A DNA stretch of 64,000 nucleotides from the NCBI GenBank assembly GCA_047495785.1, contig JBLDXI010000021.1:992001-1056000 (forward strand), in the 5' to 3' direction. The notes beneath the pieces were generated by a model, which saw only the letters and a program-made list of their open reading frames with translations, was not told where the DNA came from and ran no database searches. Positions 54,222 to 60,900 of this stretch are shown here, one piece after another. This DNA is from Lepidodermella squamata. Its lineage: Eukaryota; Animalia; Gastrotricha. A program made the translations under genes and the position numbers. The stretch's first letter is position 1; every line of letters starts with the position of its first letter.

Positions 54222-54299
54222 ATGAGAGGTCTATGTTGTTGGCTATTGATAATTCCTCTCCTATACCGGTTGATGGGCTAATCCACTGGAACTACTCAG
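54222..54299 (+). pseudogene. Orphan CA-type first exon (signal peptide + HWNYS + donor), frameshifted
   Basis: MRGLCCWLLIIPLLY is in a different frame from VDGLIHWNYS|gtgaaa. It matches the WxYS/T phase-1 exon-1 end of neighbouring CA genes. Confidence 0.6.
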
Positions 54300-54311
54300 G
54301 TGAAACAAAGG

Positions 54312-54979: not shown

Positions 54980-57339
54980 ATGTTGGAGATATTAGCTATT
55001 ACGACGCTGATGCTACCATCCATTTTATTGGCAGCCGAGCAGCAGTCTTTTAAACTTTATTCAGGTAAAAATTCACTTCGCCTAATTTTTGTATGCAAAT
55101 TTTCGCTTTTTTTCGTAAGATTTCGGTTGGGCAGCAACGTGTAGCGGTGGCAAGAAACAGAGCCCGGTTAATATCGATACATCCAAAGTTGAAGTCGACC
55201 CTGATCTGCAAGATGATCCACTCATCTTCGATAACTACTCCTGGAATTCGGTATCTGGAAACTTGACCAACGACGGCCTAACTATTAAATTCACAATTGA
55301 CGACACGATTGATGTAAAAACTCGCCCGAGAATCAACGGCGGCGGTCTTGGACAGTTTCCTTACGTCTTCAACCATCTTCAACTGCACTGGGGTAGGTTT
55401 GAGGTGCTTCTCTCGAAGAGAATTGAAAATATTTATTAACCCAGGTAATTCATCGTTTGCCCCAAGTGGGTCGGAACATACGATTGACGGCCAGGCTTCT
55501 CAGGCTGAGGTTCAATTCATCCATTACAACAGCAAATATCAGTCATTTGAGGTTGCCAGCAACAACTTTTCTGATGGTGTCGCTGTGATTGCATTCCTAA
55601 TCGAGACTGTTACTGACCCTAACAAAGTCACTACAGACTACACTCAAATCACCAATCTTACATCGCAAATTACAACTGTTGGTAGCACTGGTAAGTAATA
55701 ACCAACTGAAATTGTGGGGTCTAATAACACATTATTGTCAAGTTTCGACCTCACTGGATTTCGGTTCCCTTGTTCCATACTCAGCTCTCGCTAGTTCGGC
55801 TCGTTTTTACCGATATGGAGGCTCTTTAACCGCCCCGCCCTGCAGAGAGGTAGTGAACCTTTCAGCTTTGTATTTAGCAATTTAAAATGTGATCTCTCAA
55901 GGTGGTTACCTGGACTGTTTTCCAAGACAAAATACAGATGATGCCGAATGTATTGGATGATCTTCGCAAAGTTTTGGCTAATATCGAAGACGGAGATTCT
56001 AGCCGTGTTGTAACCATGGTTAACAACTACCGACCAGTTCAAAACTTGAACGGACGCGTTGTCACTAGCAACCAAGGCAATGATTCATCGATCAGTGGGA
56101 ACTCATCGGTCCCTGTCAGCCGAAATAGAACATCTATCACGACTACAACTCAAGAACCAGTTACATATCCTTGGGATTATTCTGGTCAGTATATTAAAAT
56201 TTGAATTTGAATTAATTGAATTGATTTTAATTTTTGAAATTGTATGAAAATTCAATTTTTTCCGCAGATACATCGGCTTGGAATGAATCGAGTAAAACTT
56301 GTTCAGTTGGAAAGCGGCAAAGTCCCATCGATATCTGGACCCACACCGCAGTCTATGATTCAAAACTGGCTAGTGATCGGTTGATTTTCGATCGATACAA
56401 CGGTCAAATCGGTGGCGAATATGCGAATGAAGGCTCAACTGTCAAGTTTACCATTGACAAGTCAATTTCGGCTGACAAACGGCCTAGAATCTACGGCGGT
56501 GGGCTTGGCGAGAAGGGTTACATCTTCGAGCAATTCCACCTTCACTGGGGTAAAGTGTCGAAAGGACCTGGCTCGTGCATGGGTGCGGAGCATCTCATAA
56601 ACAGCAAATCAGCACCGGCTGAAATTCACTTCGTCCACTACAACGCAAAGTACAAATCACTAGCGGAATCTCTCGGCTATTCAGATGGCCTAGCAGTTGT
56701 TGGTTTCTTCCTCGAAACTGTGGTCGACCCTAGTCTGGTGAAAAGCGACTACGAGCAGGTCACTAATTTGACCTCGCGAGTGCGTCGGGCTAGCAATAAA
56801 AGTAAGCGATGAATTATTACTAGACGATTTTATTACTTTATTATTTCGACTTTTTAGCTGGCACTAAATTTGACTTCGCAAAGCTGATTCCTTCGACGGC
56901 TTCGTCAGGCAAGGGTGTCTACTACCGTTACGATGGATCACTGACCACGCCACCTTGCAGTGAAGTCGTGACTTGGACTGTTTTCGAGGAGGCTATCCCT
57001 GTCCTAGCGTCCAGCCTTGACAGCCTTAGGGAGGCCACGAAATTCGTCAAAACTGATAATGGCTCAGATTCCACCCAAAAAATCACGATACCTGTTGAAC
57101 TGAGCAACAACTATCGCCCAGTTCAACAGCTGAATGGTAGAGTCGTGAAAACGAACTACCCACCCGGTTCTCGGTGGAATGGAGAAGCTAATACGAAAGA
57201 TTCGGGCAAAACGGCTGCTGGCTCTAACGCTACAACTCCCGCAAGCCAAGCTGATGCCGATGCTGTTAAGAAGAACAGCGCGATCAATATTCAATTCAAC
57301 GTAGCATTATTTATCGTCCTGATCTCGATTTTTTATTGA
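54980..57339 (+). CDS. CA12: double-domain alpha-CA (acatalytic domain 1, intact domain 2), GPI-like tail
   Basis: Domain 1 has NHLQLHWG/EVQFIH/GSLTAPPC, then a Ser/Thr linker ending PWDYS|. Domain 2 has QFHLHWG/GAEH/EIHFVH/GSLTTPPC. Confidence 0.9.
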
Positions 57340-57968: not shown

Positions 57969-60900
57969 ATGCTACTTCCAGTTTTTATCGCATTTCTTAG
58001 CTTATCCGCGGAGTCTGTTGAGTCCGCAGGAAGTGGGAGTTGGGGTTATTCAGGTAAAAATTAGCCCTTTAATTAAATAATTCCATTATAATAAAATTTC
58101 CAGATGCGGACAGTTGGGACCAAACTTGTAGCGATGGCAAGCGGCAGAGTCCTATCGATATCCGAACCAACTACGTCGTAGGCGATGCAAGTTTGGCAGC
58201 TGATCGGCTCATCTTCGACCGATATATCAACCAAACTCTCGCGGGAAATTACGTGAATACCGGCAAAACTGTTCAATTCACGATTAGCAGCTCCATTGCG
58301 GCGTCGCGACGGCCCCGAATTTACGGCGGGGGCCTCGGCGCCCAGGGCTACATCTTCGAACAACTCCACTTTCATTGGGGCCGATATTCGTGGGCTTCTT
58401 ACGGGTCTGAGCATTTGCTCGATGGCAATGCTTACCCGGCTGAAGTTCACCTGGTTCACTACAACAGCAAGTACGCGTCGTTTTCAGAGGCTGTTAAAAA
58501 CCAAGATGGCCTAGCTGTTATCGGATTTTTCTTCACCTCGACGACTGATCCAAAGGATATTGATACCGATTACACCCAAATCACCAATATGACGAATCAA
58601 ATCGTGGTCGAAAATGATAAAGGAGGTATGGATCGATTTTTCCTGAATTTTTTGGATTTTTTTATTTCCATTTTCATAGTGCCAATAACTATCGATTTCG
58701 GCAAGCTGATTCCTGGTTCTGCTAGAGCTGGGACCGGGAAATACTTCCGATATGACGGGTCATTGACTACCCCGCCATGTATTGAAGTAAGGGAACACAA
58801 ATTTATCGATTTATCGGCCCTAATTTTGCTATTTAAGGTTGTGACATGGACCGTTTTCGAGGAATTAGTGCCGATTCTCGGTGGGGCGTTGGATGACTTG
58901 CGGCGAGCCACGTGGACCGTGTCACCCTCCGGCCGTGATGATGAGACATGGGTCGAATCGATTGAGAATAATTACAGGCCCGTTCAGCCTATCAATGGCC
59001 GTGTCATTAAAATGAACCGACGCCCGCCGGCCGAAAAATACTGGGACTATTCGGATACTTCGAAATGGGCTGATATCAACCCGGTCTGTGAGACTGGCCA
59101 ACGCCAGAGCCCTGTTGACATTCAAACGCGATTTGTTGCGGCGGACACGGCACTGGCGAGTGATCGACTGGTTTTCGATCGATGGAACGCGTCTTTTACG
59201 GGCAGCTATGCTAACAACGGCAAGGGCGTGCAGTTCACTATCGATTATTCGGTCAGTGCTGATAAAAGGCCTAGAATTTACGGCGGTGGGCTTGGGTCAG
59301 ATGGCTACATCTTCGAGCAATTTCACATTCATTGGGGTAATATTTCATTTTCTCAAATTTTTCAAAATTTTAATTTTTTGAAATTTTAGGAAATTCTTCC
59401 CGACCGAATAATCCAATCGGAGCCGAGCATTTTATCGATGGTCGTTCAGCCCTGGGCGAGATTCATTTTGTCCACTATAACAGCAAATACGGGTCAATTG
59501 GAGAGGCGATTGGCAATGATGACGGTCTCGCCGTAATCGGGTTTTTCTTCGAAGTTGTAACCGATCCGAATTTCGTGAAAACCGACTACATTCAAGTGTC
59601 CAATCTCACCTCGAAAATTATTCAAAGCGGCTCGAGCAGTATGATGAAATAATTATTAATTTGGTAAAATATTCTGGTAATTTTTCCCTAGCTCAAGCGA
59701 CATTCAATTTCGGGAAATTTTTACCTACATCGGCTTCGGTTGGTTCAGGAATTTTTTACCGTTACGACGGCTCGTTGACAACCCCGCCATGTGCCGAAGT
59801 CGTTACTTGGACTGTTTTCGAGGAAAGAATCGCCATTCTGGCTTCGGCCTTGGATGATTGGAGGAAAACTACGACAAACAAGCGAACAGTCTACACGAGT
59901 AACGTGACCACCGTAGTTCCGATCACCAACAATTTTCGAGAGATTCAAGAGCTGAATTCGAGAGTGATCCGATCAAATCGACTGCCGCCTGGTGCTGTCA
60001 CATTCCGGCCCAGTTCTACAACTTCGACGATCAGGACTACAACAACTCGCCCGGCCGGAACAACCAGAACCGTCAAAGTCGTTAAAATTCCAGAAAAACC
60101 GTGGGATTATTCGGGTGAGAATTTGCTGTATAAACAGGGCATCTACCTGATATATAAAATCGGGAAATTTCTTAAATTATAAAATTCAAGCTTAATTTCT
60201 CAAGTTTCTTCAACATTCGTCCCAACTTTAAATTCTAGTTGTCTAACGTTGGCCGTAAATTTTATACATTTTTATAAATTATTCATAAATTTCAAAAAAT
60301 TAGGAAAAATTAGAAAGAATTCTCAAAATTTAATGGAAAATCAGGAATGCCCACCATTGCTTCATTTAAATCAGAAGCAAAGGCTGTTTTAACCTTCGAA
60401 AAACATTATTTGTCAAAAATAACCCTTCGTTAAGGTCTCTTCTCAATTAATTGAATTAGTTAATCTTCAATTTTTAGACCAAGATTATTGGGCCGAGTAC
60501 AACGAAGTTTGCAGATCAGGCAAGCAACAAAGCCCGATCGACATTCAAACAAGAACCGTGCAAAGCGATTCGCAACTCGCGAAAGACCCGTTATTTTTCG
60601 ACCGGTGGCAGTCAGTCAGCGGTGATTACTACAACAACGGCTATGGCACTCAATTCACAGTTAACAAGTCCATCCCAGTCGATAAACGGCCTCGAATCTA
60701 CGGCGGCGGTCTCGGCGCGAAGGGCTACATTTTCGAGCAGTTTCACATTCACTGGGGCAGGTATGCGAAACCGGGCGCGTGCATGGGTGCTGAGCATCAA
60801 ATCAACAGTCGAGGTGCGGCTGGTGAAATTCATTTCGTCCACTACAATTCGAAATACAAGTCTTTTACGGAGGCGATTGATTACGCCGACGGCTTGGCTG

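Follow-up and report, generated by a model that had tools for sequence, protein, structure and literature searches.

A tandem carbonic anhydrase gene in a gastrotrich gene array joins a domain lacking two zinc ligands to one with an intact metal site

What is a carbonic anhydrase (CA) domain that has lost two of its three zinc ligands doing beside an intact one in the same gene? The locus that raises this question lies in the gastrotrich Lepidodermella squamata, in a stretch of 64,000 nucleotides (nt) that we call the window (C21:992001-1056000, where C21 is contig JBLDXI010000021.1); this eukaryotic DNA, whose introns are very short, is part of a 121-Mb assembly. The gene, CA12, occupies window positions 54980-57339 on the forward strand and owes its name to a running number within the window, assigned in an earlier note that was made from the letters of this DNA; it is distinct from human CA XII. 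It encodes two alpha-CA domains, D1 with Gln at two zinc-ligand positions and, following it, D2 with His at all three. The joint explanation that we favor, and hold to be moderately probable, is that CA12 is a one-gene, secreted, lipid-anchored tandem CA in which D2 is live and D1, having lost its ligands in place, is kept as a noncatalytic module in cis.

Gene Structure and Metal Sites of CA12

The CA12 model has seven exons encoding 669 amino acids (aa) in an open frame with no internal stops, separated by GT..AG introns of 52-83 nt. Every larger exon matches the Pfam family PF00194 (alpha-carbonic anhydrase) above the cut-off of 27 bits, with scores of 61, 58, and 40 for exons of D1 and of 136 and 84 for those of D2. 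The layout comprises a hydrophobic N-terminus, D1 (exons 2-5), a linker rich in Ser, Thr, and Asn, D2 (exons 6-7), a Ser/Thr/Ala stalk, and a hydrophobic C-terminal end without a charged tail. The parts are listed below in window positions, with one junction of the neighboring three-domain gene CA13 as a comparator.

54980-55064, +, exon 1: ATG, hydrophobic signal-like N-terminus, FKLYS as a degenerate first strand of D1, phase-1 donor
55120-55392, +, exon 2: N-terminal portion of D1, including Cys23 and the strand HLQLHWG
55374-55376, 55380-55382, and 55386-55388, +, exon 2 codons: His92, Gln94, and His96
55445-55690, +, exon 3: middle of D1, with Glu106/His107 and EVQFIH
55513-55515 and 55519-55521, +, exon 3 codons: Gln119 and Ile121
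55743-55849, +, exon 4: D1 strand with Leu198, Thr199, Ala200, Pro-Pro, and Cys203; its end is an intron position (221.0) common to CA13 D1
55902-56184, +, exon 5: remaining C-terminal portion of D1 (to ∼56072), followed by the linker with three N-glycosylation sequons, PWDYS, and a phase-1 donor
56185-56267, +, intron 5: 83 nt, GT..AG, between D1 and D2
56268-56801, +, exon 6: N-terminal two thirds of D2
56537-56539, 56543-56545, and 56627-56629, +, exon 6 codons: His94, His96, and His119
56570-56593, +, exon 6 loop: GSCMGAEH, with the unpaired Cys435
56858-57339, +, exon 7: final third of D2 (to ∼57165), Ser/Thr/Ala stalk, hydrophobic end at about 57277-57336 (lipid-anchor-like), stop codon at 57337-57339
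59042-59062, +, CA13 junction between its first and second domains: WDYSDTS in an uninterrupted open reading frame (ORF)

Aligned to the solved structure of CA III, exon 2 of D1 reads H-L-Q-L-H-W against Q-F-H-L-H-W, giving Q92H and H94Q with His96 kept, and exon 3 aligned to CA VI reads E-V-Q-F-I-H against E-I-H-I-V-H, giving H119Q. The zinc ligands 94/96/119 of D1 are thus Gln/His/Gln, as they are in an alignment to 34 paralogous domains. Both Gln residues are encoded by CAA, one base away from a His codon. Besides position 92, residues 121 (V121I) and 200 (T200A) have changed near the metal, and the proton shuttle position 64 is Leu. D1 retains Glu106, His107, Glu117, Thr199, the disulfide Cys pair, and the CO2-pocket residues Val143, Leu198, Val207, and Trp209.

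D2 carries the strands QFHLHWG and EIHFVH, with His at 94, 96, and 119 confirmed against CA II, and additionally retains Glu106, His107, Glu117, Thr199, and Thr200, so that the gatekeeper pair Glu106/Thr199 and the second-shell Glu117 are found in both domains. The earlier note had reported H94Q and H119Q in a membrane-distal domain fused within one gene to a canonical domain. Both substitutions hold in the CA III and CA VI alignments, and the gene model pairs the two domains in one gene (Gln/His/Gln followed by His/His/His), but the word canonical is valid for the metal site of D2 only, because the His64 proton shuttle of fast isozymes is replaced by Ser. With its zinc site and gatekeeper residues complete, D2 is the presumed CO2-hydrating unit, and given the missing shuttle its catalysis probably depends on buffer. 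Position 64 was read in D2 (Ser; window 56400-56460), in D1 (Leu; window 55250-55300), and in the first two domains of CA13 (Lys); as it is not His at any of these, the live enzymes of the array may be slow or buffer-dependent.

The number of cysteines in D2 is odd. Cys23 and Cys203 presumably pair, leaving the loop cysteine Cys435 (codon 56576-56578) on its own. The loop cysteine is single also in the third domain of CA13 (near window 60800) and in array domains 22-27, and there are two in domains 20, 21, 28, 30, and 31. The lone cysteine of D2 could form a disulfide with a second chain or with a partner.

Cys23 and Cys203, the disulfide pair of extracellular and membrane alpha-CAs, are present in both CA12 domains. 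The protein has 13 N-glycosylation sequons in total and a hydrophobic N-terminus, and ends in about 14 hydrophobic residues that follow the small residues N-S-A. From the hydrophobic stretches at its two extremes we predict that CA12 is probably secreted and lipid-anchored; they would make D1 the membrane-distal domain and D2 the membrane-proximal one.

Upstream of CA12, 680 nt from its start codon, there is an orphan exon-like piece (54284-54301) that encodes H-W-N-Y-S-G directly before a GT. In strand motif and donor phase it matches first exons in the array, but no signal peptide precedes it, and it could be a relic, an alternative 5' exon, or a chance occurrence.

A Constrained Domain within a Carbonic Anhydrase Array

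CA12 is part of an array in which we rebuilt 35 CA domains over ∼80 kb with a spliced aligner (window 25900-62800 plus the downstream region C21:1056001-1097400). The full His triad is present in 21 of these domains, and one or more zinc ligands are missing from the remaining 14. The pattern x-H-Q (His96 kept, His119 changed to Gln) is found in ten of these dead domains, and in seven of the ten, residue 94 is Ile, Val, or Ala and unable to bind metal. Glu106 and Thr199 are kept almost throughout.

The loss of ligands is confined in D1 to an otherwise well-kept domain. Among the 57 alignment columns that are at least 85% conserved across the 21 live array domains, D1 retains 52. One of its differences is an N-terminal alignment artefact, and the four real losses (H94Q, H119Q, V121I, and T200A) are all at the metal site. 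Compared with every paralogue, D1 has saturated synonymous sites and a nonsynonymous divergence (dN) of 0.46-0.52 (pairwise Nei-Gojobori). In the maximum-likelihood tree its terminal branch is 0.65; that of D2 is 0.34, and the median is 0.6. D1 is clearly constrained rather than decaying and has the features of a conserved domain with a specifically disarmed site, a conclusion that has a basis other than a branch-specific ratio of nonsynonymous to synonymous divergence (dN/dS). Such a ratio, proposed in the earlier note as a check, could be pursued only as far as dN against the paralogues, since the synonymous component (dS) is saturated and the absence of orthologues precludes a branch-specific estimate. 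The neutral evolution of D1 that the same note had set against its own proposal is not borne out by the conserved columns. Loss of catalytic residues combined with purifying selection characterizes pseudoenzymes, and D1 has both, with its loss of activity predicted from the residues.

Two further observations concern the array. Domain 21 (C21:1064767-1065771, downstream of the window) has H94Q and E106D with His119 kept; with a signal-like first exon and hydrophobic tail of its own, it is partly disarmed and apparently stand-alone. A 12.7-kb metagenome scaffold from ENA (L016; 37% GC) contains a similar tandem CA array, with five separate alpha-CA domains ∼30-40% identical to the CA12 domains, and among these five we found no fusion and no CA12 orthologue.

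Could the Outer Domain Still Be an Enzyme?

To call D1 dead is to make a prediction from its residues, and the best surviving alternative is that D1 has remained an enzyme. The carboxamide oxygens of Gln94 and Gln119, together with His96, would then weakly bind zinc or another metal, making CA12 a double enzyme, and the D1 site would either need plentiful metal to work or differ in its kinetics or inhibitor profile. Much about the site is compatible with this. The replacements are the mildest possible, each lying one base away from a His codon, a His now stands at position 92, and Glu106, His107, Glu117, Thr199, Leu198, Val143, Val207, and Trp209 are all kept. Human CA II is moreover reported to stay active with a single change of the H94Q/N or H119Q/N kind (Lesburg 1997, as cited in PMC6639325), and for this reason some probability must be left to D1 as a weak or conditional enzyme. 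However, two of the three ligands have changed together in D1, a combination outside the CA II work as it is cited there, and H119Q/N are grouped among the CA II mutants with drastically reduced zinc binding (PMC10175565). The site is altered by T200A and V121I as well, and the recurrence of x-H-Q across the array, mostly with a residue 94 incapable of binding metal, points to a noncatalytic class. We regard catalysis by D1 as unlikely.

One Chain or Separate Products

We infer from the gene structure that D1 and D2 are made as one polypeptide. Followed 5' from exon 6, the frame runs into a stop just before 56231 and offers neither an in-frame ATG nor a signal peptide, and the first in-frame Met within exon 6 falls after His94 and His96. 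Intron 5 cannot hold a promoter and a first exon because at 83 nt it is too short. The extension behind D1 lacks the hydrophobic tail found behind most neighboring domains that end a gene. In stand-alone genes of the array, the first strand of the CA fold (W-x-Y) is encoded at the end of the signal-peptide exon; exon 5 likewise ends in PWDYS with a phase-1 donor, which suggests that it supplies the first strand of D2. In CA13 the junction between the first and second domains, WDYSDTS.W, lies in an unbroken ORF of 398 aa and is the very peptide predicted for the spliced CA12 junction.

A rival account is that the locus mainly yields separate products, through splicing of exon 1 to exon 6 or retention of intron 5, with the two domains seldom or never sharing a chain. 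The gene is well laid out for this: at 909 nt the D1 cassette (exons 2-5) is divisible by three, and the introns on either side of it are both phase 1 and interrupt the same YS|D site, so that skipping D1 would keep the frame and leave a plain one-domain enzyme. If intron 5 were retained, the frame would stop after six more codons and give a secreted product with D1 only. The cassette is nevertheless strongly constrained, and hence translated, and the WDYS strand at the end of exon 5 belongs to the fold of D2 and would be useless on a product ending with D1. The paralogue CA13 has the same junction fixed in a continuous ORF, and single-chain CAs with two and three domains are widespread in animal databases (also PMC5879104). 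Mainly separate products thus seem improbable to us.

A Plausible Common Origin with the Neighboring Gene CA13

The earlier note had pointed to a GxCMGAEH loop common to D2 of CA12 and the third domain (D3) of CA13 and had drawn from it a common ancestry of the two fusions. The loop itself is confirmed by the array alignment, as GSCMGAEH in CA12 D2 and GACMGAEH in CA13 D3, and the exact CMGAEH is common to these two only in the array. A Cys before xG(A/S)EH is common across the array, and CMGAEH alone was rejected as proof of shared ancestry because loop cysteines are so frequent there.

The wider claim of common ancestry is plausible on other grounds while falling short of proof. In the maximum-likelihood tree, CA12 D2 is in a starred clade (95/83) with all three CA13 domains. 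The best paralogue of D1 genome-wide is CA13 D1, at 50% identity overall and 58% for exon 3, and although the free tree does not place the two together, a tree constrained to unite them is worse by 16.4 log-likelihood units and is not rejected by the approximately unbiased (AU) test (p-AU 0.17). The motif W-D-Y-S is found only at the three interdomain junctions of CA12 and CA13. D1 and CA13 D1 also have in common an intron after P-P-C-x-E that is absent in downstream domains and displaced in domains 19-31, which counts as weak evidence because the position may be ancestral.

These observations suggest a history in which a two-domain ancestor was duplicated in tandem into CA12 and CA13, CA13 underwent an internal duplication, and D1 of CA12 lost two ligands; we would put this sequence of events at somewhat better than an even chance. 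The junction between domains 1 and 2 of CA13 (59029-59062) has no intron, whereas CA12 and domain 3 of CA13 have one there (position 7.1). The pattern suggests that an intron was lost there, hard-wiring the fusion.

Proposed Role of the Outer Domain

We propose that the CA12 fusion descends from a two-domain ancestor common to it and the three-domain CA13 and that D1 lost its zinc ligands in place, within the existing fusion. At physiological free zinc, D1 would hold the metal poorly or not at all. Selection would keep it as a noncatalytic CA-fold module in cis, a partner that presents the active D2 by docking, binding, or spacing, by analogy with other acatalytic CA domains that play such roles (PMC6609565, PMC13253706). 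A position outermost on a glycosylated stalk would fit this use.

Weighing against this proposal, besides the frame-preserving cassette, the read-through of intron 5, and the reported activity of single CA II variants, are the reading of signal peptide and anchor from hydrophobicity alone and the failure of the free maximum-likelihood tree to resolve D1 or to join it with CA13 D1. To these is added the lack of orthologues. A HMMER search with exon 6 against 1.84 billion representatives of a 15-billion-protein library found no CA12 orthologue; its top identity was 61%, to a fragment, and the best full proteins reached 36-44%. The genome itself has no second or closer copy of CA12. Word searches gave a 59%-identical fragment as the best match to exon 6 of D2, and no match to exon 2 of D1 among proteins of 50-157 aa, the only ones eligible, so that the latter result carries little weight.

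A more specific role for D1 may also be imagined, in which its vestigial pocket (His92, Gln94, His96, Gln119, Glu106, Thr199, and the CO2 pocket) would be a sensing or allosteric site that binds CO2 or bicarbonate, an anion, or a metal and thereby tunes D2. We consider this quite improbable. That D1 is instead a passive relic, recently inactivated, drifting toward loss and merely undeleted so far, would suit its longer terminal branch relative to D2 and the missing orthologue that might have shown long-term retention, but is very improbable: its 303 codons, spread over four exons, are free of stops and frameshifts, all eight splice sites are intact, its losses among the family-conserved columns are only at the metal site, and synonymous sites are saturated against the closest paralogue at an amino-acid identity of ∼50%.

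Comparison with Known Systems

As a noncatalytic module beside a live enzyme, D1 would give CA12 an architecture with partial counterparts in several known systems. Giant clams have a dual-domain CA (tgCA in Tridacna gigas, DDCA in T. squamosa) that resembles the predicted CA12 protein in overall layout, with a chain of ∼600 aa, a signal peptide, two extracellular-type alpha-CA domains, and a predicted glycosylphosphatidylinositol site near a hydrophobic C-terminus (PMC5879104). Both clam domains, however, have the three zinc histidines and are potentially functional (PMC5879104), whereas the outer domain of CA12 has Gln at two of these positions. Identity between CA12 and such mollusc proteins is only ∼30-35%, and the CA12 tandem may have arisen separately from the clam type, inside the local gene array.

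The H119Q change recurs in several of the acatalytic alpha-CA domains that occur as CA-related proteins (CARPs) and in the receptor protein tyrosine phosphatases (RPTPs) gamma and zeta. D1 is like CARP VIII, X, and XI and the CA-like domains of RPTP gamma and zeta in that an alpha-CA fold is under selection after the loss of zinc histidines, with the gatekeepers kept; noncatalytic roles are known for these domains (PMC6609565, PMC13253706), and acatalytic CA-related proteins enhance lactate transport by MCT1 (PMC6609565). Unlike them, D1 is fused to an active CA domain rather than being free-standing or attached to a phosphatase. Membership of D1 in a CARP or RPTP clade was considered and rejected, since its nearest sequences are active neighbors in the array at 48-58% identity, in a tree built without CARP sequences. 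The best solved-structure matches of D1 are CA III, CA VI, and CA XII, not a CARP or RPTP.

Sequence databases contain proteins with comparable pairings. A dead domain precedes a live one in a metaclust protein (P0029; Q-H-Q, then H-H-H) and in one from Bulinus truncatus (P0019; N-H-N, then H-H-H), and the live domain comes first in models from Penaeus, Halocaridina, Rhipicephalus, and Bradybaena. Identity of CA12 to these proteins is ∼30%, and in most of them the dead domain is second, not first as in CA12. The middle domain of P0029 (residues 75-336) has His92, Gln94, His96, and Gln119 exactly as in CA12 D1 at only ∼32% identity; the two probably arrived at this disarmed site by convergence. 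The nine best multidomain matches of the HMMER search, read by eye, have live domains throughout.

Acatalytic CA domains were already known in free form (CARPs) and on receptor phosphatases, as were dual-domain alpha-CAs with both sites intact. What appears to be new in CA12 is an alpha-CA domain disarmed at the metal site and otherwise conserved, standing beside a live one, an arrangement for which we found no paper in the literature searched. The practical value of the finding is modest and the organism obscure. The tandem is nonetheless a natural matched pair for what the CA fold does without zinc, set in an array in which 14 of 35 domains have similar changes and with comparable, unstudied proteins in a snail, shrimps, and a tick.

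The nearest functional parallel lies outside the alpha class. In the carboxysomal CA CsoSCA, a defunct domain binds ribulose bisphosphate (RuBP) and allosterically activates the live site, and beta-CAs alone among CA families are known to have allostery (PMC11086599). The cyanobacterial enzyme resembles CA12 in having a duplicated CA domain in one chain, one copy of which lacks the zinc site, and its dead half has a role of the kind that the earlier note proposed for D1. CsoSCA differs from CA12 in its CA class, its fold being unrelated, and in its bacterial origin, its cytoplasmic location, and its two halves, which form an obligate pseudo-dimer. Should the pocket of D1 prove to be an allosteric site, D1 would parallel, in the alpha class, the RuBP-regulated dead domain of CsoSCA, and allostery would be known for the first time in an alpha-carbonic anhydrase.

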